Assembly: GCA_024704765.1 (NCBI GenBank)
Contig: JAKMXF010000277.1
Coordinates: 186,001 to 250,000, forward strand
DNA length: 64,000 nucleotides
Origin: Oopsacas minuta
Lineage: Eukaryota > Animalia > Porifera
Direction: 5' to 3'
The notes below the pieces were generated by a model that made no database searches, was not told the origin of the DNA, and was given only the letters and a program-made list of their open reading frames with translations. Both the position numbers and the translations under genes were made by a program. Shown piece by piece: positions 49 through 18,300 of the stretch (position 1 is the stretch's first letter; each line of letters begins with the position of its first letter).

Positions 49-2527
49 CTACGAATTCTCAAGGCTAACTGTAGAATGTGTATTTTTGCCAATGACTGTA
101 CATTTTGCTGCAAATATACTAAATCTCACTCGATTTTCAAGGAATATAACGGAATGGCGGACAGGAATGGTTTTTGGGGAAGTAATTTGCCCAAAAAGGC
201 TGAATAGCTCGCTTTTTGGTCGGAAAAAATACAGTAAATTCGGATAAACTTTTAGTATTGAGAATAAGACGTATTAACCGAATTCTATTGTATCTGAAAA
301 TTTTCAAAATGTACAAACAATTACCTGAATCTTGTTCTGTAGGAGATAACAAATTGTATTTAGAGAAATGAGCCTGTTCTAGTGTCTTGTTCGGTGAATC
401 TCCTCTAGTGATAGAAATAGGGTCAAATGGTGGTGGAGGAGGAAATTTTAAGAAAGGCATAGGTGAGTTTGAAGCAATAGTTTCAGAAAGTGATTGGAAA
501 TCTTTGTGTTCAGCAGATGGTGAGAGATTCGAATCTGGTGTTAAGTATAGCTCAGGAGAAGAAGGTATGTCAACAGGATTCACTATTGCCAATTCATTCT
601 TCACATACGCAGGAGTACTATAAGACCTCGTCACATCAAGCTTATTAACATTACATATAGGTAACATCATGTTATCTTGTGGTGCATGACATGGTGTATC
701 ATCATATGAATTCCTACTAGAATCACTGTTAGAATCAACACTAACAAAACTAAGGCCAGTTAAACTGATTAGACTATCTGTGGTTAGTAAGTTATTCGTG
801 CTTGGCCCGTCTATTAGTATTCTACCAACGTTACTTGATTTTGTGGTAGGCTGAACTGAGAAGTCATCTAAACTATAGAAAATGGGGTAAAGTATATTAT
901 GGTTTGAACAGCTAACCAAAGATTCATAGGTCATGGGTCATGGGTCATCAAAGTGACCCATGGTCCACTCTGGTGGCTGTAGCAAAGGTCAAAGTTCAAA
1001 AAAATTCTACATATTATTATACAATAACTATAATTCAACAAAATTTGGTTCTATTTGTTCACTACAACAAATTTCGACCAACGAGACAGATATTTATTGA
1101 TGGATAAAGGACTACAAATTCGAATCAAGAGACAGTGGAAGTAGAATTCTAGTGAAAAATAACGTAGGTCTGCGAAAATTCATAATGATCATGTATACGC
1201 TAGAGACTCAGAAAATTTCATTGTAACTTACTCAATATCCGGAGAATCAGGTGATCTCAACTCTTCAGTCGACAGTTTAGCCCTTGTCCTAGAAAACCTT
1301 GATCTTCTCTGAGGTTCAGATCCCGGTGTATGCTCCCTTATAAGTAGAAAGCTAAACTCATAACCACATCCTCTCAGAGCAGCCAACGCTAAATCATCCT
1401 GACCAATTGCAATTCTCCGTGAAGCCATTCCAATACTTGGTGAAAATGCCTGCAGCACGAACTTATCAATTGATTCATCGACTCGCATCGCTCGTAAAAC
1501 CAATTGCATAACTTCTCTACAGCTAGTTTTACTGTCAATAGCTAGTGTTTTGTATTCACATCCTGGTACGATAGAATTCGAATACACTTTAATAACAGTG
1601 CCTTGTCGAGTTTGTAGTTTAAAATGTGAGATTAGCCCAGCTGATTTTTGTATTATAACCAAGGGTGATACGTCATGACGTAGTTCTTTTGATTCAGTAT
1701 TGATGTCTATGCTAGCTATGTAGAATAGGTTTGGATCTCGTTTTGCATTTGATGGATTCAATTGTATTACTCGGCTAATAACCTAAAAGAGACAGAAAGG
1801 GTAAATACATGCAGTTGACACAATCAGAAATAATACAAAAATTTAACACAGCATACTCCCGTTTTTTAGGAAGGGTTTCTTTACCCTCTATAGATTGAAA
1901 TAATTGATTTTACACAGCTTATTTTACAGTGAAAACCGGGAATTACAGCCAACAAAAAGACAGAAACTTTTTGACGTTCGCATTCCGCAATTTAATGTCT
2001 AACTCATGGTAGAAAAATAATAATTTTCAAAATATTATTTGCTTGATTTACTGTATTTCTGCGGTATTATACACCGTCGATGTAATGAATTATAACGAGA
2101 AAATAATATATTAAAATAACACAAAGAATACACTTACTTGTTGAAGAAGTTGTCCACAAGTTGTAGTAGCTGAGACCTCAAACAATTTCATCTCAGGCTT
2201 CCCACGTATATCATTCAAACTAGGGGTACCATCAGGACTTGACTGATACAAACTAGTATCAATTTTAATATTAACTCTATTGTTCATGTTCAACGGTGGG
2301 AGTGATGACGTCATGAGCTGTGGAGCTAAGCTTGATACACTCGCGGGGCGGCTAATTTCTAACGAAACTGTTTTGTTGTTTTCTTCTTTATTTTTGTTGA
2401 TTTTGTTGTTTGCGAAAATGCCAGCTTGTGAGGTCCCAAAAGTCGTAATTGCAGTAGCGCCTGATATACTTCTTCGGCGAGTCAATTTTTTGTTGCGTAG
2501 ACTGAAATTCGGTCTTCCAGAAAACAT
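49..2527 (-). CDS. Tandem Ras-association (RA) domain protein with Ser/Pro-rich disordered C-terminus; 4 predicted exons (2527-2138, 1782-1232, 911-325, 68-49), ~515 aa
   Basis: Joins ORFs 2111-2527, 1228-1761 and 137-934 via canonical GT-AG sites with matching phases (0, 2, 1); total 1548 nt is divisible by 3. The second domain (IKVYSNSIVPGCEYKTLAIDSKTSCREVMQLVL) resembles afadin/RADIL-type RA domains; the first (KLFEVSATTTCGQLLQQVISRV) is also RA-like. Exons 3-4 are less certain. Confidence 0.6.
928..998 (+). promoter_or_regulatory. Cluster of nuclear-receptor half-sites (DR1 arrays) in intron 2 of the RA gene
   Basis: AGGTCA-T-GGGTCA-T-GGGTCA (928-947), TGACCC (954-959) and AGGTCA-A-AGTTCA (986-998). 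Confidence 0.3.
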
Positions 2528-2773
2528 CTTTCTTAGCTATGATAAACTATAATATCAAATTTTTGTTTGTGTTTGCTTGTTTGTTTGTTTGTTTGTCTTT
2601 TTTCAGTCAAAATGTATATCGCATATATATATTGTTGTTGCGGCCGAGCGCTTAATATTTTCGTGGCATTTTGTGGCTAAATATGTTTTTATCCAAAATA
2701 AACTACATATTCTCAAATATGATATTATAGGTACGAATTAGCATTCAAATTTCAACTGGAATGCCCAATATCT

Positions 2774-2795
2774 TATATATATATATATATATATA
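2774..2795. repeat. (TA)n microsatellite
   Basis: Perfect TA run of about 11 units. Confidence 0.9.
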
Positions 2796-5130
2796 TTTCT
2801 GTGTGTATATATATATACATGATGGTAATAGTAATTGTGTCTACATATGTGCTAAACAATGTAAATAATGAATTGAATTAAACAGCTTGATAATCAAATC
2901 TAATTGAGAATTGCGTATTAAATACAAGTACCAGATTCTCCAATAATTAGTCAATCATTAGCAATGCATAAATGAGGATAATTTGAATATTGAATTTCAA
3001 TACTATCCTCAATTGAATATTATTAATCAAGACTAACGCTAACTAAGGTAAAATCCTATACAATTTGAATGGTATATATTATTCAATGCAAAAATATAGC
3101 TGAGATTATTCATTAATTCAACCATAATGTTTTGCTTAAAGATATGATAAAATATTTTTGCATAAAATTGTAATACAACCATCGATTTTCGCCAAATAAT
3201 TATTGTTGTAAATTTTCAAATAATTATATTAAATTCATGAATTTGTTTGCGGAACATTGTAGGAGTAGAAATCCCAATCATGCAATTACCGAAAACTGGC
3301 AATTGACAATGGGATAATTGTATAATTGTTATCCAGGAATGTCTGAAAAATGCCGGTTTATGCAGGTTCAGTGTACTCACGAATATTAGAAACAAATTTC
3401 TAAATACGTAGATGTTTCTCCAATTTACTCCATAAAAGATTCCTGATGCTAATCAATGGAACAATCATAAACAGTTTCAATAACAAATTTCCCAAAGTTT
3501 TACGAATTTAAATATAAGATTTCCAATAATTTTACTCCATAAAAAGCATAATAAATTGGAGTATAAAAGTGTATTTGAATAGTGACAATACAATAAAGAG
3601 GAAACTCAGTAAAGCAAAAATGTTCATGTTAGGTATTAGCGTTTTACAACCAAATTTAGAATTCAATAAACAGCTGGTAGTAATTCTTTGGAATATAAAC
3701 AAGTTTAAAATATGGATTCTAGTATCAGTTGATTATCTTTGGATAGAAATGACGAAAAATGTTAGAATCCTTTAGCCTGCGAAAATCGAAGAATTGAAAT
3801 TCTAAAAAAATGAATTCAATGGATGCCGGTTATAAGAACATACCGGATATAAGCACCATCTTCTGGAAAACTGTTCTCATATATTCCTGTATATTTCACG
3901 CTGGTTATAAGAACAGTATTGCTACTCCCAAGGGGTTCTTATAACCAACATTCCCCCCTATTTCAAATGATGAATAAATGAATAATCAAAAATATTTAAA
4001 TAAACATAGCAGAATGAGTGGAAAAAATCTCGCATATCGACCAGTGTATTATTGCCAAGAGGTAAAATTCCTTGAAAATATTCCAAGTATAATTCAGCTA
4101 TAAATATTTACATTTGCATCGCAAAGTAAAGCATAAATGCTGATTGACAGAACAAATATGTGTAATAGAATTGATTCAATTGTAAATGATAATAAGCAAC
4201 TTTAAAATACATATATTAACTCACCTTATTCATGACAAATAAATCTCAATAAAATTATTTAGAGTTAAGAACTTAAATATCATTATACCATATAGACAGT
4301 GGTATAAATAGGGGAAATGTTGAAATAGTTTGCAAATATAGTAATTGTATTAAAGTCTAGGGAAATAAATATAAATTGATTAGCCCAACATTAATTAGAT
4401 AATTTAAAAGTGTATTGTAATGTAATATAGGGTGAAATGAGGATTTTAGTATTGGCTTGTATTTGGATTAAATTCCTCAATTCAGAAGAATTTCTATAAT
4501 TACACGAGGAATTTGCAATTAGCAGATATTGGAGGTGTCGAAAATTGACAATTCGGTGGAAAATGAGGCAAGAATAACTGTTTTTTTTAAATAAGGTTTG
4601 AGATTAAATAATTCAAAAATGGTGAAAATTTCTTGGCAATAAATTTTCAGCTTTGAGAATGTGGTCGGGTGACATTATTCCATTATTGTATGACGTCTCC
4701 AGAAAGTATATTGTTTATTCCATAGATATAGCATATGGATTGAGTCATTATTGGTAAGTTGTGCTAGACAAATCATCATCTGCATCAAAGTATGCATTAT
4801 TAAGATTGTGTATTGAAACTGCAACGAAATTAGGATCACCGAAAAGGTTTATCGTACACAATGGAATAAAAAAACCAGTCATTCAGTTTAATAGAGCCAC
4901 AGGTTAAACAGATCGCGGTCTATGCGTAATAATCGTGATGAATCGAATCACTGAAAGTTTGGCACTACGTTTTACCCAATTCCGCAAAATTTGAAAGAGT
5001 TTACACATTTTTAGATATTAAAATTACGGAATTTTGCCGATCTGAAAGAGTTTACTTGGAAGGAAATTAAAAAACAAATAATGATGATCAAATTTTCAAA
5101 AAAATCAAAGATTCGGTAAAGAATGGGAAA

Positions 5131-5345
5131 CAGTGTTCTCGTCAGGATTGTGTAATAGGGGGGTGCGCCGTACACACTCTGTGCACAATACGCGTAAAAA
5201 TACACCCTTAAGGAAAAAGAAGATGATGGCCCGTTTTTTGGGTGAATATATAAAATTGTTTATCCACGATAGAGGGGTACACTTTGTCTATTTAGGCACG
5301 ATAGGGGTGGCTGCGCCCCCCCAAAAAGACCTAGCGAGAACACTG
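5131..5345. mobile_element. hAT-family MITE
   Basis: TIRs CAGTGTTCTCGTCAGG / CCTAGCGAGAACACTG; 8-bp TSD ATGGGAAA / AAGGGAAA (7/8). Confidence 0.8.
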
Positions 5346-5976
5346 AAGGGAAATGCCAATGTTAATGAGGCTTCAACGCAATTTATGAAAAACGGACATA
5401 AGTTTAGACAATGCTAGAAATCAACACTTTAATACTAATATTTTAGAATAGAAACTTTCAAAAGAGAACTTAAATATAACTCAATCAGACTAATGGATAG
5501 ATAACCAATAAATGCAGTGAATTGAGATTATTCAAATATAATTAAACTAGATTTGAAGATATTCTGTAATACAGCGCTAATGTATCAGCAATAGATTACA
5601 AGCTATTTCGGAGAACAATGCTAAGTTCAAGGTAGGAATAATGTTCAAGTGATATAAATATAGTATGTACAGCTTGAGTTTCTGTTATAAATAGTCAAAT
5701 ACACAGATGGCGATGGCGATGGCGAAACCCAGTGTAGATTGCTAAGAAATAGATACGAACAAAATCAATAAGATTTCAATGGGAATATTTTGAGCCAGTT
5801 GCAAAATCGATATCACTTCAGAGAGTATTACTAAATAATGATCAAAGAAATAAAATAAGATAACATTAGATAATTATGCAACTTGCTTTTAACCATCAAA
5901 CGAGGAAAATTGTATACTTCTCAGTTTTATGTGATAATAATTACACAAATATGCTAGACGAATAAAAAGTCAAATA

Positions 5977-6277
5977 CAGTAGAAACTCTATTTGTGGGGG
6001 GAGGGAGGTACAGCGAATCTCCAGATAACACCCCATTCCCATTTATAATTTCAAATATAAATGTCCTTTAACAAGAGATTTTTAGGTCAATACGGGTAGC
6101 CACTCCCTCCATCGACTGTTTTTTATAATTTTGTTGGTTGAATCCAAAAATTATAAGAAACTTTATTTTGGGAAACACAAATATTTCAATTCATCATAGC
6201 TATAAATACTTGTTTTTTCCAAATTGAATATTACAGAAATTTTTTCGTAGAATTCCCCACTTAAAGAGATTGCACTG
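5977..6277. mobile_element. pogo/Tigger-like MITE
   Basis: Imperfect TIRs CAGTAGAAACTCTATTTGTGGGG / CCCCACTTAAAGAGATTGCACTG, flanked by TA on both sides. Confidence 0.65.
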
Positions 6278-7955
6278 TATATTGTGCTATTACGTAGCTT
6301 GTTTGTACACTCTGAGTAAATGGCGAAGTAATGACAATATTCGTGTTGTACTCAAATCATATGCGGGCAGTGGAGCTGAAACATGTTTCTAACTAACTAA
6401 TAGTGGCTTACAACGAACAAGTTATCCTACGCTTAAAACTCTACAGAAGTTGCACAGGCAATTTAATATAAATAAATATTTCAATACTTTTGGTGCATAC
6501 TTCTTTAATTTTGAAAATGTTAAGACATAACATGACAATATTATATTATAACCAAATCAGGAAATTTAAAAGTAAGCCTTTTGGCTGGCCTCTATATAGA
6601 CTGCACTTAGCATAATTTTACGTAGAATGAGATTAATTAATATTAAATATAGCTAAGTGGTATAACATCGTACAAGTAGATTGAGCAATCAATTTGTGTA
6701 GATATGAGGTCTGAATATGGTATAAGATGACTTTATGAAAGTTAGAAGTGATGTAAGAATTTTATCCTAACTAATGAAATAAAACCTGAAATTAGTTTGA
6801 GGAAATATTTGCAATGAGAGTTATGGAATTTAAATCAACCCATTAAGTTTTTTTATTATTAATAGTCTAGCACGTCAAATTTATAAAATACTCGCAAAAA
6901 AACAAAAATAGGTTTAATCATATCACCAAAACTGGCCACGGATATTTAGGTAATATTTTGCTCAAGTCTCCAATATCCAGTTAGACCAAACTTGGTCAAA
7001 TATGAGCAAAAGTGGCCAAACATGACATGACGAAAAGTCAACTTGAGTGTGGTTATGATACAGAATTTCATACAAGTGTGGCCATAGTCTATGAGAGTTT
7101 GAGAAACAGTGCACACTAAAATGTTGATTTAATTGAAAATATACTTGGGTAATTCTTTCGAAAATATTCAATCACCAAACAAAAAATATAAATATCGAGT
7201 GTGATAATAATTAAATGGGCAATTTTCCAAACACATTCACACTATACGTATAATTACATTTTATCTACTGACAACCAATCTGTATATGATTACACCTGCA
7301 GCATTAGACTGCTATTATGTTCAGTAAACATGACCTTTTCGCTTTAACTAATCCAGAAAGTCATTCATAAATTATATCATAACGAATCAACACCTCAATA
7401 TTATTATAATTAAAATGTAGGCTGTACCATGATCGAATAATTAATTATCAAAAATAAATTTAGAATCTTACGTATAAGAATTACAATTAAATAATTGGAT
7501 CATAATTGTGGACATAAAATTGAATAACTGGCGACGCGATATCACTCAGAATAATTAGAACAATAAGAATTCGGATTGGATCATAATGTGCGTAATTCGC
7601 TTAATAGGGGCGTTGGTTAATCGGGTCAAATGGCTTGTTTAAGCAGAGTTCGTCTAATATCAAGTCATATTTTCCGCGATTTTCCTTGCTAATATACGAA
7701 CTTGCTATTACTCTCAAGATTTGACAATAATTCTAACGATTATCGAGTTATAATTGGATATTCATAAGAGGAAACATTCCCAATACAAAATTGAATTGCG
7801 AATAGGTGAACACCAATGAGTTCTATAAATATATATCAAGTTGTTTGTTTGTTTGTTTGTTGTTTTTAGTTTATATTAAGCATCTTTAGTAGCAAATTTC
7901 GACACTTTTTCACAGAGTAGAAAATAGTTTAGCACCATAAAAATATCCGTAATTA

Positions 7956-8205
7956 CACTCCCTGGCCAAAAGTATTGGAACACCATACCATTAATGACGC
8001 ATGTGGCATATGGTACATTGCGAGAATATACGTACTGAATAATTTTGAAAATATATCAGAAAAGGCAATTGTAATGATAAAAGTAATGATCGAAATATGA
8101 TCACAGATGTTTGAAATAAGTTTCAGCTTATACAACTAGAGTAAATTCATATTTGTGCCATGTGTCAATTGTGGCAGTGTTCCAATACTTTTGGCCAGGG
8201 GAGTG
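7956..8205. mobile_element. Tc1-derived MITE (250 bp), copy 1
   Basis: TIRs CACTCCCTGGCCAAAAGTATTGGAACAC / GTGTTCCAATACTTTTGGCCAGGGGAGTG with TA TSD; near-identical copy at 43342-43592. Confidence 0.9.
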
Positions 8206-8317
8206 TACATTTCTAGTATTTAAAAGCAAGCTTCACAAAAATAACATGCATTAAAATGATAAATAATGCAGAATAAAATGAAAATAAATACAAAGAAATT
8301 TTGTCATATAACAATCA

Positions 8318-9220
8318 TCAAACTATATACAAAATATCTTCAATAGATTTCCGCAAATATTCATCATTACGATAAGGTACAGTAGCATTATCAGCAGGAT
8401 AACCAACTGGCATAAAGAACAATACACGCTCATTATCTGGACGATTACACAAACTACGTATAGCATTCTCCGCACCCATCGGTGTACTAACTAATGATAC
8501 AAGGTTCGCATTGTGTATTGCAGTTAATAGTATCCCTGTAGCGATACATACACTTTCCATAGGATAATAATGTGCAATTCTTTTGCCGTTCTTTAAACCG
8601 TACTGTTGTTTTAACACGATTATAATATAAGGGGCTTCTTCAATGTACGGTTTGACAATTTCATTTTCAACATGTAAAGTGCCCATTAACGGGCCCAGAT
8701 CTTTGATCCAGTCACTGTTCATTCTATGATCGTAGTTCACTCTTTCTTCATTTTCAATTACTTCACGTAATTGTGTTTTTATTATTTTATCTTTTACTAT
8801 TACGAATGTCCATGGTTGGCAGTGTGCACCGCTAGGAGCTGTTCCCGCGGTTAAAACACAATTTTGTATTACTTCAATGGGAACTGGGTCTGTGCTGAAA
8901 AACCGTAATGTCCGTCTTTGGTTCATGAATTGGTAAAATGCTTGGGAGCGGCAAATCATCTCATTTTTCGCGATCCGTTCGTGACGAAATTCAACATATA
9001 CATGCTCTCCCGTGGATTTAGCTGGTAAAGTATCAATGACTTGCTCAGAAACGAATGGGCAAATTGAACTGGATTTTCTTTGTTTATTCTGCAACGATAA
9101 TACATAATACATTACAAGCAATAATGGAAAACAACCACATAGAAAACCAATCACAAAACTAGTATTTTCCAATGCAAGAACTTGTAGAAATGCATTGAAG
9201 ACATTGTATAAGAGACCCAT
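8318..9220 (-). CDS. IYD: Iodotyrosine deiodinase (FMN nitroreductase fold) with N-terminal membrane anchor, intronless
   Basis: RRTLRFF, TAGTAPSGAHCQPWTF, EERVNY (substrate Glu/Tyr), VKPY (substrate Lys), HYY, STP, PVGYP..ATVP motifs match animal IYD; hydrophobic N-terminal segment. Confidence 0.93.
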   Translation of the reverse strand: MGLLYNVFNAFLQVLALENTSFVIGFLCGCFPLLLVMYYVLSLQNKQRKSSSICPFVSEQVIDTLPAKSTGEHVYVEFRHERIAKNEMICRSQAFYQFMNQRRTLRFFSTDPVPIEVIQNCVLTAGTAPSGAHCQPWTFVIVKDKIIKTQLREVIENEERVNYDHRMNSDWIKDLGPLMGTLHVENEIVKPYIEEAPYIIIVLKQQYGLKNGKRIAHYYPMESVCIATGILLTAIHNANLVSLVSTPMGAENAIRSLCNRPDNERVLFFMPVGYPADNATVPYRNDEYLRKSIEDILYIV

Positions 9221-9600
9221 AATGTATCTAATTACTCTAATGGGGCGTCAAAGGATGAAATAAGCTAATAATTAACATTCAAATTCTAATCAGTTATAGT
9301 GTTGAAGACAGGTGTAGTATTACATACGAATAAATTCCTTCATAACGAGGAGAATATTACTCATATCATATATCTATCAAGGAAGCATACACGTATATAA
9401 TTACGTGTGTTTATACGTATATACAGTGAGACCTCCAGAGGTGGCTTGTGGGGCCCTCCAATTCATGTCAAATCTCTGGAAGGTTGGCAAGTATAAGTGT
9501 GTAACCCCGAAATTCTCTGAGGCTCTGCAAAAAAAGGGTAATCCAGTCATATGAAAAATTAAATAAACCTCCTGAGCCGATTCCAATTCAACTACTAGTA

Positions 9601-9765
9601 CAGTAATCTCGTTGATACGAACACGGTTAAGGAGTACAAATTTGTACACTGTATCAGTCCCTTTCGATGCCTTTTCAATGTGAATTAGCTCGGATAATAC
9701 GTACTCCGGATAAGGAGTACGAATTTTGGCAGTCCCCTGGTGTACTTATTAACTAGAGTCTACTA
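9601..9765. mobile_element. pogo-like MITE, degenerate
   Basis: TA-CAGTAATCTCGTTGATACGAACAC ... GTGTACTTATTAACTAGAGTCTACTA-TA. Confidence 0.6.
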
Positions 9766-10329
9766 TAATTTCAATGGGCTTCGCTCCTACATTGCATTTG
9801 GGGGCTTTGAGCGTCGAATTTGAACCCTCCAGGTTGGAATGCCACGATGCAACTGCTACGAGGTCAGTTCAAAGGCCCTTCCACCACTGCCTTACAGTAA
9901 CCAGGAGGGGCCAGAATGGCTGAACAAAATTTATGATGGTCGTCAGCTTTCTCGAAAACATTAAATAATATTCCTTAATAATTTTATCCCAATAGTCAAA
10001 ACATCTCTGTATCATTCCATAATCAAGTTAATACGTAACAATAAAAATATAATATTCAATAAAATAGGGATGGGCGAGTAACAAATGATGTTGCGTTATG
10101 ATCTCAAAAGGTGGTGCAGATGTTACCAATTGAATTAAGTACTTTGAGCATTAAGTGGATATTTGTAATAATTAGCGGTGAAATAGATAATAGCACGAAA
10201 ATACTGAGACACTTATAATATATTAACTATTTGTTGTCAAGCATTTTGGGCGTCGACCCAGAAGTGTAATAATGGTAGACAGGTTAAATTTATATGTATC
10301 TATTGAAATGACATTCAACTATGTCCCGC

Positions 10330-10990
10330 CCAAAATTGGCCTAGCCTAAGCCTGGCTGTCATATAGCAAATGTTGTGCATAACCATTTTACATGAATAAT
10401 CCCGGATATATGTTGAAAAGGCAGAATGTACAGCGTTTCTGCTTATAAGGTAAAAATTATGATTATACTTATAATATCTGATACTATAATAAAAAGTTTG
10501 CGAGAAAATCATTGTAAGAGCCTTGAGAAACTAAATAAATGCTTATTCACTATTTTAGCTAGGAAGCATTTGTATATATAATTAGGCGACAGTGGTAAGA
10601 TTATAGAAAGCGATGACTCTTATAAATCATAAGCCACTTTTGGATTAATATAGTAATGTAGATATTTCGGGAGATGGTAGAGAACAGTTAACTATGATAA
10701 GTTAAACCACGTTAGAGCCAAAAGTTTGATAGAAACACGAGACAAAATTCTCCTAATATTTGAAGATGATCATAAGGTACATATATCCACAAAAATAGAT
10801 GCAAATTTATCGCCCAAATCTGACTGGAATTGAGGTAGGTTTTAAACTAAAAGTTTTGGAAAATCATATTAGCAAAGAGGGATTGAATTCTGCAACCGTA
10901 ATTAGCGAAAATGTTAATCTCGGCGTTTTTCTTAGCCTTAACAAGATATTTTAAATAGCAATATTAACTTGTAAGTAGAAATAAAATTTC
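10330..10990 (-). pseudogene. Decayed class A (rhodopsin-like) GPCR
   Basis: Manual translation with stops/frameshifts: NIAI*NILLRLRKTPRLTFSLITVAE (TM1-ICL1-TM2), RFGR*IC (ECL1/TM3 Cys), LYHLPKY (ICL2), SIILPL (TM4). Confidence 0.4.
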
Positions 10991-11125
10991 ATTGTTTTAC
11001 TTATTTTCCCCACAAACACTTTATTGTACATACAATGCATAACTATAGAGAAAATTGACGTGGTGCATTCATGCAAAAAAATGTTGAATAGGATTACAAA
11101 GAAACTAATAAATGAAGCAATTCTA

Positions 11126-12604
11126 ATGAAATTCAACATAAAAATGGATAATATACTACTCACTGAAATCAAAGAAAATTCAAGCACAAATTTTCATGGC
11201 AAGATAACGGGGAAAGAATCGAAAAAACGGCTTTCACTGCAAATCAAAATCCACACAAACATAATATTAATCCCAATATTAATCATAAGTGTTTGGGTCA
11301 CAGCTTTCGCCATGACGTCAATATTTGTCGCGATTATAATCAGGCCGAAACCCCAACTTTATAGGCAAACAATATCGTCAGATATTTATGTGAAGACCAA
11401 AGAAAACATGGAAATATCAACATATATAAGTATTTGCCCTTGGAAAACCATGGATGATGGATTATGTGATTTTCCAATTGATTGGCACCCATATGGTAAA
11501 AAATGGGGAAAAATAGAACAAACTGTATTAGTGCTAATAGATATATGCGGGTTAATAGTTTGCGTATTTAGCATTGCTTCATGGCTTTTATCTGGACAAA
11601 TCACATATTTTCATCAATTTGGTGTATTTATAATGGTTTGCTTACTAACAGTTCAACTTTTCACGTATTCAATATTTGATATTCAAGGGCCAAGGCATAT
11701 TTTAGGGGACGGAGAACATTCGGGAAGAAGCGAAGCTTCTAAGTTACACCAAGACAGAATTAAATTTTTGGTAATTACCCAGTACATTTTGCTCCTGATT
11801 TTGATCGGATGGATACTATTCAGTTTGATAAATATCCTATTAACAGTGATTTTCAAGAAAAAATTTTCCCCCAACAGAAATCGTAAGGTAAAAAAGATAA
11901 TCGCATTTTTTGAAACATCCAGTTCAATATTCATCAGTATTTTCGTGATAACAAAGTCAACACTTGCTACAAATGATTATGAATACTATCCATTTTTAGG
12001 GTATATAATTTCCACTCCAGGCATGATAAACAATTGGACGTTTGTGATAATTCTTCCATATTTCATCGCAATATTCATGATATGTTTGATAATTATACTA
12101 GTACTGTGGATATACAATGTCAAAGAAATAGTGTCAACTCAGCCGATTCGGAAATTACAACCACTTGAACGCAGGCTCATTGTATTGTCATTAATTCTTA
12201 CACCGTGCGTGATAATTAACCATTCCCTAAGCGTATGGTTCAGTTATATAATTGAAGATTGGACAGTGAATATATATGATAATTTGCTGTGTGGACAAAT
12301 GTTTTCACAAATAGAAACTGGAAATTTAACGATAGGCGAACTTGTCTATGGTGAAGATTGGAAAAACGGTGAAATATGTCACTTGATTCAAAGTAGCGAA
12401 GCTTTATACCCAAGTTTCTTATTCATATTCGCGGTTATTAGCAAGAGACTGGTATTATTAATCAGTTTCTTAACTACACTACCGAATGGAGTGTTTAATA
12501 TGATTAGAATAAAGATATACAATTGCAAGGAAAAGTTTTCTCATAAAGAAATATTTAAGAAAATCTGTATACCGTTTAGCAATATTAATGTTCGCTATTT
12601 TTGA
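11126..12604 (+). CDS. Class F (Smoothened/Frizzled)-like receptor lacking CRD, with an extra N-terminal TM helix (8 hydrophobic segments), intronless; paralog 1
   Basis: Within ORF 11024-12604; first plausible ATG at 11126 (or 11144). TM0 (IILIPILIISVWVTAFAMTSIFVAIII), Cys-linker CPW..C, seven further TM segments, long ECL3 with two Cys ending YPSFL. Aligns along its length with paralog 2. Confidence 0.75.
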   Translation: MKFNIKMDNILLTEIKENSSTNFHGKITGKESKKRLSLQIKIHTNIILIPILIISVWVTAFAMTSIFVAIIIRPKPQLYRQTISSDIYVKTKENMEISTYISICPWKTMDDGLCDFPIDWHPYGKKWGKIEQTVLVLIDICGLIVCVFSIASWLLSGQITYFHQFGVFIMVCLLTVQLFTYSIFDIQGPRHILGDGEHSGRSEASKLHQDRIKFLVITQYILLLILIGWILFSLINILLTVIFKKKFSPNRNRKVKKIIAFFETSSSIFISIFVITKSTLATNDYEYYPFLGYIISTPGMINNWTFVIILPYFIAIFMICLIIILVLWIYNVKEIVSTQPIRKLQPLERRLIVLSLILTPCVIINHSLSVWFSYIIEDWTVNIYDNLLCGQMFSQIETGNLTIGELVYGEDWKNGEICHLIQSSEALYPSFLFIFAVISKRLVLLISFLTTLPNGVFNMIRIKIYNCKEKFSHKEIFKKICIPFSNINVRYF

Positions 12605-12842
12605 AATTCAATTTCAATTAATTGATAGTATGAATTACATTAGTTGTGTTCTTATCAAGGTTGAAACCGATCGAACAAAGTTAAGAAGTTCAGTAAATCC
12701 CCCCAGCTGGTCACGAACCCGAAGTGCTCCAATAACCGGAGTCTACTTGCAAGGATATAAATATATATTTATCACAAATTCTACCATACAAAAGGAATAT
12801 TATCAATGTAATACAGAAAAAATTGAGCAAAAATAAAAGTTT

Positions 12843-14372
12843 TTATGCATTAAAAGATTTATTCCGAATGGAGAGATTATTCCGAATGGAGAGATTATTC
12901 CGAACGGTAACGTTATTCCGAATGGTAACGTGTTTCTCAGCATGAACTCTCTTTGAACATTTCAATTTTTTCATAACCAAGTTTATCAAGCCACCAGGTA
13001 AAGTTAATAGAAAAGTTGGTAGCCATAAAGATCGTATAAGAAAATGGTTGATAATCTCTAAAAATCCTGGATAAACGTCTGATTGATCAAAATTAGTTTC
13101 CTGACAAACTCTATGCAATGTACTATTCCAATAATTAGGCATTATCATTTCACCCATTGTGAATCCATCAGTTGAATTTCCTTTCGAAACTATTGCGCTA
13201 TGCAACGAGACACACATTAAATGCTCGTCAAGACGGTCAGTGATCACATCGCTTACAGATGACGACCAAATTAAATTAATAAACATGTATATTAAGTATA
13301 GGACCATTAGAAGTGAGAGGAAAATAAACCGTTTTTCGAGGGAACTGATTTCAAGGCGAGAATCTTTGAATTTCGTAATTGAGATTTTTTTCAGATGTAG
13401 GTGAGTGAGAATTCCGATTGCAAAACTGTAAATAACTCCAATAAGAATTATGCAGGGCGCGAATTGAAGGAAATATGCGAAATCTGGAGCAGCGAGCATA
13501 GTAAACCGATATGGATTGAGGTAAATATAGCGTTTACCGGATATGAGAGGGATAATAATCGCGAAAATTGGTAAGAGTGAAAAGCAAATTTCCGTTATCA
13601 AAATTGCGATTTTAACCTTCCGACTAATCGTAAAACAAATCTCAAGAGAAATATTTAAGATTGAAAAGAAGAACCAAAACAACGTCAATATATTCAAGAA
13701 ATCATAAACAGCGCCGAATAAATTAATACGTGTTGAAAACCGCGAATTCACTTCTGAAACATCAATCCTCTCATTGTTACAGAAATACAGATCTGATCCA
13801 GGAATTCCAGTGACAGCCAGATTCAAAACCAACAATGTAGCGATACAAGTTACGAAGAAGATCCCAATATGAGTGAATTTCAAAGAACCAACAAAAGGCC
13901 AGGAAACGAGATTAATAATACTTAGGCCGATACCACAAATACACATTATGGCAAACAAAATTCTTTCAATTAAGATACAATTGGGACCGCACGAATGGAA
14001 AGTTCCACAGGCATAAACACACCTTTTCTCCGATTCAGAATAAATAAATTCGCCAGAACAGTTGATGGAAATATTCATTTTATTTTCAATCGTGAAATTT
14101 TCGAAAGAACCATTGTAGAATGTTATGTTTGGGTTGACATGTGTTTCCCGAGATTTAACGTTGATATAATACCGAGATCCAAGCAGGATAACTAAAATTA
14201 ACCAAGTAGAAGCAATGGAAATTATGGCTAGGGAAATGCAAAAAACTTTAGAATATTTTCGATCAATTTTCGTTTCGCTTGAACACATATTCGAGTTCCT
14301 TCTTGGAAGAATAATCGACTCGGGATTACGCGCATAGCGAATTAAAATTGATGAACTTCGTTGGCGCTCCAT
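12843..14372 (-). CDS. Class F (Smoothened/Frizzled)-like receptor lacking CRD, with an extra N-terminal TM helix, intronless; paralog 2
   Basis: Basic N-tail, TM0, N-glycosylation sequons (NIT, NGS, NFT, NIS), linker cysteines, 7TM. DEHLMC..RVC..YPGFLEIINHF resembles Smoothened ECL3/TM7 (DYVLC..C..PSLLVEKINLF). Confidence 0.78.
   Translation of the reverse strand: MERQRSSSILIRYARNPESIILPRRNSNMCSSETKIDRKYSKVFCISLAIISIASTWLILVILLGSRYYINVKSRETHVNPNITFYNGSFENFTIENKMNISINCSGEFIYSESEKRCVYACGTFHSCGPNCILIERILFAIMCICGIGLSIINLVSWPFVGSLKFTHIGIFFVTCIATLLVLNLAVTGIPGSDLYFCNNERIDVSEVNSRFSTRINLFGAVYDFLNILTLFWFFFSILNISLEICFTISRKVKIAILITEICFSLLPIFAIIIPLISGKRYIYLNPYRFTMLAAPDFAYFLQFAPCIILIGVIYSFAIGILTHLHLKKISITKFKDSRLEISSLEKRFIFLSLLMVLYLIYMFINLIWSSSVSDVITDRLDEHLMCVSLHSAIVSKGNSTDGFTMGEMIMPNYWNSTLHRVCQETNFDQSDVYPGFLEIINHFLIRSLWLPTFLLTLPGGLINLVMKKLKCSKRVHAEKHVTIRNNVTVRNNLSIRNNLSIRNKSFNA
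12860..12932 (-). repeat. 18-bp coding tandem repeat (4 units) in the C-tail of receptor paralog 2
   Basis: ATTCCGAA-containing 18-nt units encoding TIRNNV-TVRNNL-SIRNNL-SIRNKS. Confidence 0.85.
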
Positions 14373-15350
14373 TCAGACAATAAACAATAAAAATATAATA
14401 AACATGTGTATATCATTCTATTTAAATAGGGCTTGTAAGATAGAAAATCTTACAAAAAGTTATTAGCATAAATGAATAGTGTAACAAGATACTGTTGATA
14501 ATATATGTAAAAGTCCATTGGAGCATAGACTAGTAAGAAGAATAATAGTGTGACATCTGGGGTGTAAGGAAAGTAAACGAATCATACGGAAGAATGCGTG
14601 GAGTTTGTGCAATATCACATATTTATCATATAACATAGCAGAGTTACAAATAAGCAGAAATATTTTTATTGTGATCGTAAGCACACCAATAAGAAAATAT
14701 TTAGCCAAAATTGAACTTCAAATCATAGCATGAACATATAAGTTTGTCACTTTTAGTTGTGTCAAAAATATTTGAGTTTGAGCAAAACACTAAGGTGCAT
14801 TAGATTAAGCAAAACTTTGAAATACATAATTTACAAATAACTTTGTGTATTAGCTTTTCTATCTTCGAGGAAAGGTCATTTTTCGGATTAATGAAAGTAA
14901 CCTTTTCGAATGAGGGTATGGGGTTTTGTATTACAAAAACCTTTACTGTTCTATAGCTCAGCTATATATAAGGGATCTCCATAACTCTTAGTGAAGGTCA
15001 AATCTGTCATAAAAATATTGGGCACAAGCACTGGAAACTAGATTTTTCAACCCGTGGTCAAATGACCAAACTTGGCTACAGATATATTTACGTCAGTTTT
15101 GGTAAAAAAAGGTTTAACCAAATGTGGCTAAACATAGCCAAATCTGACCAAACCTGAACCATAAGTCGACCTAGACGTGGTCATGACGCATAATTTTAAA
15201 AAGAGTATGGCAATATCCCATGAACCACACCGATAAACAATACTATGTGTAAATACGTAGTAATTAAGAAATAACGTTAGAATACACGTGTGTATAGTAA
15301 ATGATAGGGTTGCGTGAAATATATATTATAGTGTTAAAGTGGAAGAATAA

Positions 15351-18300
15351 TCACTTTTCAATAGTAGGCAATGTTTCCCTGATAAAATTACTGACTTGAG
15401 TTCGCATAAGCATGTTCTCCCTTACATGACGTATTTCCCCTTGTTTCTCAGGGAAATTCTCACCCAGCTGGTCCATGACTGTGAAAAGCAATTGCGTGCG
15501 TTGAGTATGCATTTCTAATTCAGAATCTAAATTGGCAGGGTTTTTGCATAAAGTTGGGTATTTCCCTTGAGTTGCATAATCCAGCTGTTTAGTACGGTTT
15601 TGTAGTGCAACTATGATAGAGAGATTCTTCTGTTTTTCACGAGTTAAGTCTTCGATTTGTTGATCTAACTGTGAAGATGCATCATGTAGTTCTAGGCAGG
15701 TTGTCTGTGTGGATTCCAATTTATCACCTAAGAATTGTACAGTCAACTTCGGTTATATAGAAATACCCGCTTATATTGAAGTCTAAAATTGTGCAAATAT
15801 GGTCCTAAACCGTCAAAGTAACATAAATTAGACTGGTTATCATACTTTCTAACATTTCACGTCATTTTCGAGTGGAATTAGGGAGAAAACATGAAATCTG
15901 AGGATTGGCAAAAAATGCCTGAAAATTTGTGAAAAAGGTTAGGCATCAGAATTTGGGTTCGATCGAACTCCGTATTGTTGCAAAAATTTGAAATAAAAAG
16001 TATTTCGGATATGTTTTCAGAAAATCTACTTACCTAAAATATTCTGAGAATCTTGAATATGTTTCAATTGCTGCTCAGTTTGTATAGTCTTCTGTTCTGT
16101 CTGTACTATCTTTCTCTTCATATCATCCAACTTTAGTTGTAGCTGTCCAGTAGTTTCTCCTTTTCCTGATTTCAATTGAGCATCTCCTTTCTTCTCAATT
16201 GCTTCTCTTCGGTATACAGCCTTCTCCATATCCTAATAGGTAGAGTGCAGTTAATTAACCCAGAAAGTAGGATAAGGCCTGGGCATCCAGACTCCTAATG
16301 GTTTGGCTTTTGATCTGAGTGTTGGACAGGCTCAAGGGCGTCGTAAAATTTGTTCGGCCCTTTGAGCCAGTCGGACGCCATAATTCAGGGACTGGAAACG
16401 GGAAAATCGTCTAGTGACGTGGCCTGACACTAAACAATTGTTTTGAGTCATGGAGAGCTGGAAATTGGGATTTAAAACATTACATCACGGATAACATCAC
16501 AAGCCGAATGGGCCAAAATCTATATAAACAACTCACTTGAATAAGTTTCTCCTGCTGTCTCTTCAGCTGATCATATCTCACATGCATTCTATGAATCTCA
16601 GCCTTCATTCCTTGTATTTCTTCTTCCCCGTAATCTTTCTGAAGCATGTCCTTCGTCTCACGAGCTAAACTTATTTTCTTTTCCCACAACATTACTTGCT
16701 CTTCAGCCTCGATTATGCTTCGAACAATTCGTACTTTCTCTTCTTTAACTTCGTTCAGTTGGCTTTGTAACCGAATAGATTCTAATTCTGCATCTTTTAG
16801 ACTGTGAATAAAATCGTTTTCGATTAGAAGATTTCCTTGTTCAAGATTCTCCTGCTCGGATCTTTTGTGAGTTAACAACTCATGGAGTTTTGACATGTCT
16901 TTACGGAGCCCTGACATCGATTTAGCTACTTCCCGATTCTCAACTTTCTCTTGTTCAAACTAGAAATTACGAAATAATAAATCACTAAAGCACTTCGCTT
17001 GCTAAGTCGCTGCGGGATGCCGGTACGCTAGAATTAAAAAATAGCGTAATTTTATGAATTTTAATGGCAACACTGGAGCGGCTATGTAGCATTTGGTAAT
17101 TGATCTCGACACCTCGTGCTTCGAGTAGTTATTAAGAAACTCTCAAAATTTGCTACATTTTCAATTTTTTGTACAGTCATTATGACATAAGAATTCCATG
17201 ATGAATATACTTTGGACTTGGCTGAGGATGAGCAGTGTGCAATGATGTGTTTTCGATTATCCAAAAGGTGATAATCACATGAAATATGTGAATCTTCGTC
17301 CAAGACTCGAACTTGTCTGAGCCAGGACCAAAATACCCCTGGTTATTGAAACTCACATTCGAGTCAAGTCGTAACTTTTTCTGATCCAATATTATCATCT
17401 GTTTAATGAGCTTATCAATGTTTATTTTCTGTTCCTGAGTTGAAGTTACAATCCGAACCATTTCAGATTGTTCTCGAAGCCAGAAATTCTGTAATTTCTG
17501 AGATTCCTCAACAGAGGCCTGTACTTGTTTTGTTAGTTGATTTATAGTGAGTTCTAAGGGCCCTAGTTCTTGTTCAGCACCTTCTCGACCTGTTGAAGAC
17601 ATAAATACATTAATAATGCGTAATTAGTATAATCAGCAATGCTAGGGCCAACCAAATTAAATATTAAGGAGCCTACATTTATATGCAGCCGATTTCGCTG
17701 AACCGAATGTTTGTTTCTTTTCTAGATACAGTGAAACCTCTACACACGGGCCGGTGGAAACGTGGAACTTCTGGTAACGGAGTGAATATAAATAGAGCGA
17801 TTTCCTAGTCCGACATAAATGAACCTCCACAACGAGGGGGATATGTTGTACAGTCAATACCGGTTATAAGAACATGTTCTTATAACCGGCGTGGAATGTT
17901 CTTATATCCGGTAAATTCCATGGAGTAAGATACAAAAGATTCGGTATATCGAGTTATGGTTCTGATACTCGGTATTCTTATACCCGCCATCTACTATAGT
18001 AGTTTGAGGATGTCAAACTGTCGTTTGGAATTTCACAAAAGTGAGAATTTTACCTGAAATAATTTTATCAATCATTTTATTGAGTTGATCAATCTTAGTC
18101 TGTTTCCTATCAATGAGAGTATTCTGTTTGTGTATTTCCTGTTCACAGCGAGATATCAGTACATTTTGTCCCTGCAGTTTCTTCTCGTAACTTTCAAGTA
18201 TCTTAGTTAGTTCTTTGAGTTGAGAAGAATGTTTCGATAGCTCTAAGTCCTTTGTAGCTATATTATTCTCTAATTTGATAGCAGAGCTCTGTAACTCACG

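Follow-up and report, generated by a model that had tools for sequence, protein, structure and literature searches.

Class F receptors are defined by a signal peptide, a Frizzled-type cysteine-rich domain (Fz CRD), a seven-transmembrane (7TM) region, and Wnt or Hedgehog signaling. Relatives without the CRD are already known in Dictyostelium, the Fsc ('sans CRD') proteins, and among amoebozoan Fsl receptors the CRD was lost repeatedly; they are mostly devoid of the KTxxxW motif, show lineage expansions and often fall under Pfam thresholds (PMC10445921). According to published reports, Wnt, Wls, Dvl and FzdA are missing from glass sponges (PMC5684314, PMC10280926). Their FzdB is reported as a recognizable Fzd5-type ortholog with a degenerate KTxxxW, for which G-protein signaling without Wnt and Dvl was proposed (PMC5684314, PMC10280926; Schenkelaars et al. 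2017; Santini et al. 2023), and 8 G-alpha genes are reported in Oopsacas minuta (PMC10280926). We analyzed a window of 64,000 nucleotides from O. minuta (contig JAKMXF010000277.1, positions 186,001 to 250,000) that contains two adjacent receptor genes, p1 and p2. We consider it likely that both genes are intact and code for conserved members of a class F (Frizzled/Fsl-type) family that is very divergent and expanded in glass sponges, anchored by an extra N-terminal helix (TM0) and devoid of the CRD.

The open reading frames of p1 (type B) and p2 (type A) are convergent and lie tail-to-tail (Table 1). From their sequences, the two are true paralogs (BLASTP, 25% identity over 369 amino acids, E value of 4e-22). 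Both frames are uninterrupted and align with orthologs over their full length, and the assembled contigs show no joints, indicating that neither gene has an intron. The preliminary description of an intronless tail-to-tail pair was thus borne out, except that it set the start of p1 at 11126. As the p1 orthologs begin at p1 residue seven, the start is probably at 11144, which gives a protein of 486 amino acids. An upstream exon coding for a CRD was looked for, as its presence would have changed the picture. Such an exon is unlikely, because in-frame stops occur 3 to 51 nt upstream of the aligned ATG in 13 of 14 family genes, with a TGA directly 5′ of the p2 ATG, and because the RNA-like contigs are colinear. 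Those contigs cover positions 10824-12596 over p1 and 12875-14871 over p2. Run X4 is unlabeled but behaves like RNA, with gene-wise depth and adapter-like ends, and its depth is lowest (3.7) in the spacer between the genes; this single run gives a hint that both genes are expressed.

Table 1. Features of the receptor locus (positions within the window)
Feature	Position	Strand	Details
Nitroreductase-family gene, synteny anchor beside the receptor pair	8321..9220	-	tblastn, 65-68% identity to nitroreductase genes flanking the orthologous receptors in L001 and L003
p1 CDS with stop (type B)	11126..12604	+	492 aa; ORF open from 11024/11126
p1 TM0, extra N-terminal hydrophobic helix	11243..11347	+	residues 40-74; hydropathy peak 2.45; aligns with TM0 of all B-type orthologs
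p1 seven-TM core	11507..12490	+	residues 128-455; R350 = R6.32 at 12173-12175; hydropathy, alignment to p2 and family
Spacer between both stop codons (convergent 3′ ends)	12605..12842	.	238 bp
p2 CDS with stop (type A)	12843..14372	-	509 aa; ORF list
p2 seven-TM core	12996..13979	-	residues 132-459; AF2 model, fold searches, HMM alignment to FZD3/FZD6
p2 extended TM6 and long ECL3	13068..13250	-	residues 375-435; C387-C423 pair, 2 sequons
p2 extracellular linker	13980..14174	-	residues 67-131; 5 N-glycosylation sequons, three-stranded beta element, C105, C118, C122
p2 TM0, predicted signal anchor	14175..14252	-	residues 41-66; hydropathy 2.62
p2 cytosolic N-tail (predicted)	14253..14372	-	residues 1-40; basic; alignment A1, charge count, motif scan

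Direct searches with the two proteins were empty. A Pfam scan returned no family at an E value of 10, Frizzled PF01534 included; phmmer against PDB sequences gave chance matches only, and a narrow profile of 12 family sequences (A1) found nothing in the PDB. The link of p1 and p2 to class F therefore goes through intermediate sequences. Against 1.84 billion representatives, the A1 profile gave 61 matches, including protein P0058 of Oscarella pearsei (E value of 3.5e-8), which passes the Pfam Frizzled model (33.8 bits versus a cutoff of 22.3), and P0059 of the amoebozoan Stygamoeba (2.3e-7). Of the six outlying matches that were traced to their source, none is a named Frizzled of a metazoan. 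Profile-profile alignment (hhalign) of A1 with the Frizzled-like outgroup gave a probability of 98.5% and an E value of 2.4e-15 over 280 columns, and one family member reaches Pfam Frizzled by itself (1e-3). A profile of 42 sequences from which the outgroup was left out (A3) matched human FZD3 (2.2e-5), FZD6 (2e-3) and FZD4 (6e-3), as well as FZD1, and the alignment is in register at the linker C-x-P-x-C, the ECL1 cysteine and R6.32. Homology to the Frizzled/Smoothened membrane region was found at the profile level only.

The AF2 model of p2 (pLDDT of 76.6, pTM of 0.75) gave a concordant picture. The top four Foldseek matches in the PDB were FZD4/FZD7, the top five in the VIA fold search were all class F (Z of 18.7-19.4, with 306-329 residues aligned from residue 103), and the top ESM Atlas cluster was Frizzled-9b. 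Language-model features also ranked Frizzled first. The AlphaFold and Foldseek check that had been proposed at the outset thus returned class F receptors as best matches in three fold libraries, from the linker hairpin onward, and the assignment to class-F-type 7TM receptors is common to the profile, profile-profile and structural searches. In VIA, class A matches align over approximately 266 residues and prostanoid receptors reach a Z of 18.0, approximately 1 under class F; the margin between the two classes is small in Z but large in aligned length, and it is mainly this length, with the linker, that separates them. A generic GPCR bundle of some other class (adhesion/secretin, cAMP-receptor-like or novel), with a class F signal due to convergence or to a compositional artifact, would fit the lack of a direct Pfam match, the only slightly lower scores of class A and B structures, an adhesion GPCR at an E value of 0.02 in the A3 search, and the Methuselah and 7tm_2 clusters among the language-model neighbors. 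Nevertheless, every significant profile match is a Frizzled, and the alignment keeps its register between the linker cysteines and TM6; the hhalign partners are Pfam-Frizzled-positive sponge proteins, and the family shows the linker hairpin specific to class F along with the linker-ECL1 and ECL3 Cys pairs. This makes an origin outside class F very unlikely.

Within class F, the receptors had been called Smoothened-like. No SMO chain was found among the A3 profile matches at E values up to 10, and with the wider A2 profile SMO reached 1.1 or worse. As the family profile matches FZD3, FZD6, FZD4 and FZD1 but not SMO, no specific affinity to Smoothened is apparent, and the name Frizzled/Fsl-like is more fitting. 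If the proteins were Smoothened orthologs or functional analogues, i.e., sterol-gated transducers of a Hedgehog/Patched-like axis, one could cite in support the shared class F fold, the long TM6 extension and ECL3 that recall the Smoothened protrusion, and the similar structural scores (8cxo, Z of 19.4; 4o9r and 4jkv, Z of 18.7). mSMO is even nominally the top VIA match (19.4), but it is tied with FZD4 (19.3). The Smoothened-like beginning of TM7 (P-G-F-L-E-I-I-N-H-F), which resembles the Smoothened stretch PSLLVEKINLF given in the preliminary description, occurs in subfamily A only, and the resemblance is missing from p1 and most subfamilies. Since the likenesses are shared class F features, the profile link is lacking, the CRD is absent and W7.55 is not kept, we regard a Smoothened identity as highly improbable.

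Kyte-Doolittle hydropathy identified one N-terminal hydrophobic segment (residues 40-74 in p1 and 41-68 in p2) and seven more in each protein; TM7 of p2 is under the threshold used, yet it is helical in the AF2 model, in which the TM0 region forms a helix from residue 31 to 76 (pLDDT of 87-93). The N-tails are basic (8-10 K+R versus 4 D+E), and K+R amount to 22% of the predicted inside loops versus 8% outside. Both analyses agree with the order first proposed, i.e., a basic N-tail, an extra TM0, a Cys-bearing linker and then seven TMs. TM0 is found in nearly all family members, as far as approximately 200 residues from the N terminus. On a heuristic reading, it lies 35-40 residues in, spans approximately 25 residues and is flanked by basic residues. 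Seven sequons fall on predicted outside segments and five others in TM3 or the C-tail. TM0 thus looks like an uncleaved signal anchor. It might instead be a long, N-extended signal peptide that is cleaved, leaving an ordinary 7TM class-F-like protein with a short free N terminus like that of Dictyostelium Fsc. Small residues (G-S) do follow the p2 hydrophobic core, some family members have only 13-20 residues before the hydrophobic segment, and CRD-less class F relatives with short N termini exist (PMC10445921). Cleavage is nonetheless unlikely, given a core of approximately 24-26 residues preceded by 30-45 residues (up to approximately 200 in P0016, P0020 and P0028) and flanked by basic residues on its N-terminal side. 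Moreover, the conserved N-tail motif of subfamily A (R-x-R-S-S-S .. R-Y-A-R-N/D-P-x-S-I-I-L-P-R; alignment A1) is kept among orthologs that are just approximately 50% identical overall. A family-wide N-tail phospho-motif was also considered and rejected, as only subfamily A and the P0016/17/18/28 group have the R-x-S-S-type motif.

Between the predicted anchor and TM1, p2 has 65 residues with 4 cysteines and 5 N-x-S/T sequons. Given this short interval, the stops just upstream of the ATG, and the lack of a Pfam Fz match (PF01392) in p1 or p2, the receptors are CRD-less, as the preliminary description had stated. Three of the four class F extracellular Cys pairs are present (linker-linker, linker-ECL1 and ECL3-ECL3), and in the family alignment their members co-occur and are lost together. 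C105/C118 are both present in 43 family members and both missing in 1; for C387/C423 the numbers are 36 and 8, and for C122/C198 they are 36 and 7. The fourth pair, TM3-ECL2, a disulfide that is otherwise nearly universal, is found in 0 of 44 members and in 6 of 6 outgroup proteins, and p1 also lacks the linker-ECL1 pair. ECL3, with approximately 35 residues between its cysteines, carries a motif common to p1 and p2 in their pairwise alignment (G-N-x-T..G-E..W..C..Y-P-x-F-L), of which G407, W415, C423, Y434 and P435 vary little or not at all among 12 orthologs and paralogs. The two ECL3 cysteines, the shared motif and the glycosylatable p2 linker had been noticed before, and the alignment and sequon scan agree with them.

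Conserved residues of the p2 core are W233, N240, E261, R348, R447 and T457-x-P459. R348 (bases 13329-13331), like R350 of p1, corresponds to R6.32; it is conserved in 41 of 44 members and aligns with the Arg of F-M-I-R-I-G in FZD3/FZD6 (R416 in FZD6, from chain numbering). In class F receptors, the basic residue R/K6.32, where TM6 ends on the cytosolic side, is the molecular switch, and W7.55 at the end of TM7 is its partner. After TM7, a Trp equated with W7.55 through by-eye alignment is kept in a few subfamilies and in five of six outgroup proteins shown; p2 and p1 have V/I there. Downstream of TM7, neither p1 and p2 nor their orthologs have KTxxxW, the Dishevelled-binding motif of helix 8. 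Relative to metazoan Frizzled (best profile matches FZD3 and FZD6; structures FZD4 6bd4, FZD1 8j9n and FZD7 9epo), p1 and p2 thus have the same 7TM bundle with linker hairpin, in the same predicted orientation, the linker-internal, linker-ECL1 and ECL3 Cys pairs as a family, the long TM6 and the basic 6.32. They differ in the absence of the Fz CRD, of the TM3-ECL2 disulfide, of KTxxxW and of W7.55, in the probable absence of a signal peptide, in the extra N-terminal TM with its predicted cytosolic tail, in the enlarged ECL3 and in a nearly invariant TM7 Arg, and they are too divergent for Pfam PF01534.

The family comprises at least seven subfamilies in four ENA assemblies and this genome, with tandem duplicates. 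A lineage-expanded receptor family, as had been surmised, was not found in the literature search, and on the literature searched it is apparently undescribed. Orthologs of p2 number seven (48-56% identity); those of p1 include P0008/P0009 (49%) and one in L001 (36%). The succession nitroreductase - type B - type A recurs in other assemblies, and three other genomes preserve the A/B order, two with X copies in between; the nitroreductase gene is also present in L006, where type B is missing beside it. A quick midpoint-rooted tree, which does not order the events, places types A, B and X in a single supported clade; they lie next to one another, and both observations fit local duplication. Because glass sponges reportedly have no Wnt/Dvl partners and type B is absent beside the L006 nitroreductase gene, the genes might be regarded as decaying or non-signaling remnants of a lost Wnt pathway, with no receptor function. 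However, frames are intact in five genomes, TM segments, cysteines and charged core residues are kept at approximately 50% identity, the family has diversified into its subfamilies and tandem copies, and RNA-like coverage extends over both genes. The remnant explanation is extremely improbable, and pseudogene status was rejected on the intact frames, conserved residues and diversification.

The nearest named relatives of these conserved receptors are homoscleromorph proteins: O. pearsei P0058, O. lobularis XP_065835417-20 (uncharacterized) and P0096, named 'frizzled and smoothened-like protein H', and Corticium candelabrum XP_062506945. A protein search with the outgroup alignment A4 returned two proteins. 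Like the present family, the homoscleromorph proteins have the linker, ECL1 and ECL3 cysteines, an N in TM3, an E in TM4 and R6.32, and in P0058 and the O. lobularis protein a basic N-tail precedes a TM0-like helix. Unlike p1 and p2, they keep an ectodomain with 13-15 cysteines, the TM3-ECL2 Cys pair, a short ECL3 and a Trp after TM7. The P0058 ectodomain matches Pfam Fz (4e-5) and the Fz domains of MuSK and ROR2 (1.5e-4 to 4e-3); it was assigned as an Fz-type CRD from these matches, the AF2 model of P0058 being poor (pLDDT of 53.7, under 50 in the ectodomain). The earlier proposal that a type II anchor replaced the CRD does not hold, as TM0 and an Fz-type CRD occur together in the Oscarella relatives. 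Their succession of basic N-tail, TM0, Fz-type CRD and 7TM argues that the anchor is older than the loss of the CRD.

The amoebozoan Fsl/Fsc receptors are similarly divergent and lineage-expanded, with CRD loss and mostly without KTxxxW, and P0059 is matched by the family profile. By description, on which this comparison is based, Fsc proteins of that other lineage have short N termini rather than a cytosolic tail and an extra TM. Glass-sponge FzdB is likewise a class F receptor with a degenerate KTxxxW and proposed G-protein signaling, whereas the receptors analyzed here have no CRD but eight TMs, are encoded by many genes, and are unmentioned in Schenkelaars et al. (2017) and Santini et al. 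(2023).

We propose that a basic cytosolic tail would lead into a single membrane crossing by the uncleaved signal-anchor TM0, followed by a short, glycosylated class-F linker stapled by disulfides and then by a 7TM bundle in which TM6 is extended far and ECL3 is enlarged and closed by a disulfide. As there is no Fz cysteine-rich domain, Wnt-type or CRD-sterol binding would not be possible; a ligand may be sensed by the linker/ECL3 lid or by the 7TM cavity with its conserved polar N240, E261 and R447. Heterotrimeric G proteins would receive the signal by way of the L-E-K-R at the base of TM6, which is conserved and whose R is R6.32. Coupling to G proteins rather than Dishevelled is suggested by the absence of KTxxxW and the reported lack of Dvl in glass sponges, and the conserved TM6 base together with the G-alpha genes reported in O. 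minuta points the same way. To speak of an 'undescribed signalling system', as the preliminary description did, is a conjecture.

A tentative scenario, which we find possible but doubtful as a whole, is that of an ancient, hitherto unrecognized sponge class F branch in which TM0 took the place of the signal peptide. Homoscleromorphs would have kept the CRD. Glass sponges, having lost Wnt, Wntless and Dishevelled, would have discarded the CRD together with the TM3-ECL2 disulfide and the Dvl motif. They would then have diversified the receptors into a multigene family of G-protein-coupled sensors, with variable linker/ECL3 lids reading new, non-Wnt ligands. If true, a receptor class would have been repurposed when its canonical pathway vanished.

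An animal lineage reported to be without Wnt and Dishevelled nevertheless has many intact class-F-derived receptors of a different architecture. This opens the question of what the class F 7TM core can do without CRD and Dishevelled, and that of the relationship between the Frizzled family and amoeba Fsl-type receptors at the base of animals, for which the CRD-bearing, TM0-anchored Oscarella proteins represent a natural intermediate. The family could include some of the sensory or developmental receptors of glass sponges.

Two uninterrupted ORFs lie tail to tail in the window, 238 bp apart in the ORF list, and code for the type B receptor (paralog 1, p1) and the type A receptor (paralog 2, p2). 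As their products are 25% identical over 369 residues (BLASTP; E, 4e-22), they are, at the sequence level, real paralogs; a third copy of the receptor gene was not found within the window. Hydropathy analysis revealed an N-terminal hydrophobic segment, TM0 (residues 40 to 74 of p1 and 41 to 68 of p2), and seven more segments in each protein. In p2, the linker, i.e., the extracellular segment between TM0 and TM1, contains four Cys residues and five N-x-S/T sequons, and extracellular loop 3 (ECL3) contains two of each. The Lys+Arg content is 22% in the predicted inside loops versus 8% in the outside segments. The preliminary description of the pair was accurate as to ORF orientation, paralogy, TM0 followed by seven segments, and the Cys residues and sequons of the linker and ECL3. 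The p1 ORF also exists as proposed, but its translation probably starts at 11144 rather than 11126, because the p1 orthologs begin at its seventh residue. Upstream of p1, contigs from two of four same-sample sequencing runs have 24 bp inserted at 10240 compared with the window sequence, probably an allelic indel.

Coordinates of the receptor genes, their relatives, and neighboring genes
Feature	Location	Strand	Remarks
p1 (type B) ORF	window 11126-12604	+	492 aa; frame open from 11024
p2 (type A) ORF	window 12843-14372	-	509 aa
Nitroreductase-family gene	window 8321-9220	-	65-68% identical to receptor-flanking genes in contigs L001 and L003
131-aa coiled-coil-like ORF	window 15351-15746 (region 15316-15746)	-	under the highest depth of run X4, ~3,500-10,000
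Tandem type X duplicate between types A and B	L002 8758-13338; L003 9858-13766		copies 92-96% identical, ~440 aa
P0032	L005 6001-7917		in a subfamily with P0041, P0042, P0044 and P0046
P0016 and neighbor gene	L004 6001-8004 and 10149-12200		

A word-index search yielded relatives of p2 (seven proteins, at 48 to 56% identity) and of p1 (two, at 49%); they all derive from ENA assemblies, and none has a Pfam domain. With a 12-sequence profile, 61 matches at an E value of ≤1e-3, 46 of them at ≤1e-10, were obtained among 1.84 billion representatives. Contig look-ups placed family members in four assemblies (ERZ20067936, ERZ25071281, ERZ25069837, and ERZ25072740). The family was compared with an outgroup of six Frizzled-like proteins.

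The sequence relationship with class F receptors emerged through profiles. Direct searches failed: scanning p1 and p2 against Pfam gave no family even at an E value of 10, and neither a PDB sequence search with the two proteins nor the 12-sequence profile returned a PDB match. The same profile nevertheless reached Oscarella pearsei P0058 (E, 3.5e-8), a protein that passes the Pfam Frizzled threshold (33.8 bits versus a cutoff of 22.3), and P0059 of the amoebozoan Stygamoeba (E, 2.3e-7). Aligning the 12 sequences with the six outgroup proteins using hhalign gave a probability of 98.5% (E, 2.4e-15); the 280 aligned columns extend from the linker cysteines through the first ECL3 cysteine. A 42-sequence family profile built without the outgroup matched human FZD3 (E, 2.2e-5), FZD6 (2e-3), FZD4 (6e-3), and FZD1 (0.018); two members of unrelated families, an adhesion GPCR and a chitinase, had E values of 0.02 and 1.5, respectively. 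Smoothened chains were absent from the matches of this profile, and the Smoothened-like TM7 noted previously holds for subfamily A but is confined to it in the alignments. The family and Frizzled alignments are in register: the C-x-P-x-C before TM1 corresponds to C-S-P-P-C of FZD3, the ECL1 cysteines pair with each other, and the Arg of the family L-E-K-R motif is aligned with that of Frizzled F-M-I-R-I-G, which in FZD6 is R416 (position 6.32 by chain numbering).

Structure prediction with AlphaFold2 on the 12-sequence alignment (pLDDT, 76.6; pTM, 0.75) gave a model with the TM0 helix, a short helix, a three-stranded element (residues 102 to 120 in p2 numbering, used from here on), and seven helices, including a long TM6 (344 to 391), with ECL3 partly helical. 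Class F structures ranked first in three fold libraries. FZD4, FZD7, and FZD4/DEP were the top Foldseek matches in the PDB; the ESM Atlas shape search placed a Frizzled-9b cluster first; and the top five matches of the VIA search, which is independent of Foldseek, were all class F (mSMO, Z 19.4; FZD4, 19.3; FZD1, 18.9; human SMO twice, 18.7). Language-model features also ranked a Frizzled cluster first. Class A prostanoid receptors came next in VIA (Z ≤ 18.0), with some 266 residues aligned from near residues 121 to 130, compared with 306 to 329 residues from residue 103 for the class F chains. The margin in Z is small, and it is the additional alignment of the linker and of TM6/ECL3 in the model that singles out class F. 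Taken with the profile matches, we consider it likely that these proteins are divergent class F (Frizzled-type) receptors.

Conservation was counted over 44 family members and the six outgroup proteins. C105 and C118 are present in 43 of the 44 members; C122 in the linker and C198 in ECL1 are found as a pair in 36 members and are both missing in seven, including p1 and its clade; and C387 and C423 in ECL3 are both present in 36 and both missing in eight. That the cysteines are lost in pairs argues for three predicted disulfides matching the class F pattern. In contrast, the cysteines at the top of TM3 and in ECL2, found in all six outgroup proteins, occur in none of the 44 members. The conserved core comprises W233 and N240 (TM3), E261 (TM4), E346 and R348 (TM6 base), P435, and the family-specific R447 in TM7. 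The KTxxxW motif is absent, and the outgroup Trp following TM7 is substituted in p1 and p2. The ECL3 inter-cysteine span, about 10 residues in the outgroup, reaches 30 to 35 in p1 and p2 and carries sequons.

A TM0 segment is present in nearly every family member, 13 to approximately 200 residues from the N terminus. P0016, P0020, and P0028 have long, hydrophilic, Ser-rich tails, which rules these tails out as signal peptides, and in subfamily A the tail motif R-Y-A-R-N/D-P-x-S-I-I-L-P-R is kept among orthologs only about 50% identical overall. The gene models had been described as lacking the Fz cysteine-rich domain (CRD). A hidden upstream CRD exon is unlikely, because, of 14 genes from five genomes, 13 have an in-frame stop 3 to 51 nt upstream of the aligned start; the p2 ATG is immediately preceded by a TGA. 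The proposal that the anchor replaced the CRD did not hold. In P0058 and an O. lobularis protein (XP_065835417-20), a basic N-tail and a TM0-like helix are followed by an ectodomain with 13 to 15 Cys residues and then the 7TM region. The P0058 ectodomain matches Pfam Fz at an E value of 4e-5, below the curated cutoff, and its four best PDB matches are Fz domains of MuSK and ROR2 (1.5e-4 to 4e-3). As helix and CRD-type ectodomain coexist in these nearest named relatives, the predicted TM0 anchor most likely predates CRD loss. No description of this putatively TM0-anchored class F architecture in homoscleromorphs was found in the literature searched. The O. lobularis records are our P0068, P0083, and P0084, which combine an Fz-type ectodomain with a Frizzled-type 7TM as P0058 does.

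The N-terminal regions differ among subfamilies. In P0032 and its four relatives, a glass-sponge subgroup, TM0 and the linker are separated by a Cys-poor segment of 156 to 173 aa that bears six to eight N-glycosylation sequons; no Pfam family matches this segment, so it may be a new ectodomain. In the subfamily of P0016, P0017, P0018, and P0028, a predicted cytosolic tail of 65 to 190 residues precedes TM0 and contains one to three copies (three in P0016) of R-M/L-E-K/R-R-x-S-S-hydrophobic-S, which resembles a basophilic-kinase site. p2 opens with the same motif, M-E-R-Q-R-S-S-S-I-L.

A quick maximum-likelihood tree with SH-aLRT support only separated the 44 family rows from the six outgroup rows (support, 89) and resolved at least seven subfamilies, which are paralogs since several co-occur in one assembly. 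Types A, B, and X, the last a third receptor type, form a single clade (support, 98), which fits local duplication; the midpoint root serves for drawing only, so the tree does not give the order of events. The order nitroreductase-B-A is common to the window and L001, without type X copies between A and B. The tandem X duplicate occurs in two related assemblies: L003 has the nitroreductase gene, B, two X copies, and then A, and L002 has A, X, X, and B, the fetched stretch stopping directly after B with the nitroreductase position out of range. In L006, type B is missing and a Pfam-Nitroreductase gene flanks type A. By gene order and similarity, the nitroreductase gene is a stable synteny anchor beside the receptor genes.

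None of the four sequencing runs from the one sample is recorded as RNA. Depth across the region is flat in three, whereas in X4 it follows the genes: from about 6 upstream it rises to 18.6 over 10824-12596, drops to 3.7 in the spacer, and reaches about 200 over 12875-14871 and thousands in the gene that follows. Adapter-like loose ends are likewise a feature of X4, and its contigs have no joints inside either receptor ORF. X4 behaves like an RNA library, although this is no more than suggestive, contig depth being a poor measure. The 131-aa ORF, where X4 depth is highest, could be a small gene with very high expression. Between p2 and the next gene, 14842-14970 has a depth of about 2,000 to 5,500 in all four runs, compared with 50 to 200 around it, many loose ends, and a replaced segment of 44 bp (14906-14951); this stretch has the look of a small mobile element or of a dispersed repeat in many copies.

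According to published work, Wnt, Wntless, Dishevelled, and FzdA are missing from glass sponges, which keep FzdB with a degenerate KTxxxW motif and a proposed G-protein route (PMC5684314, PMC10280926); the present family is not mentioned in these reports or in the other literature searched. Dictyostelium Fsc/Fsl proteins are class F relatives that, like the p1/p2 family, have neither a CRD nor KTxxxW (PMC10445921), so this kind of receptor is already known. New here are the predicted eight-helix architecture, the lost TM3-ECL2 disulfide, and the family's expansion in an animal lineage reported to have no Wnt. The data demonstrate class F homology, architecture, conservation, and synteny. The p1 and p2 products are most likely surface receptors, which would sense non-Wnt ligands via a linker/ECL3 lid or the 7TM cavity. 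They might couple to heterotrimeric G proteins through the conserved TM6 base, a mechanism to which we give roughly even chances, and the predicted cytosolic N-tail before TM0 may add a regulatory handle.
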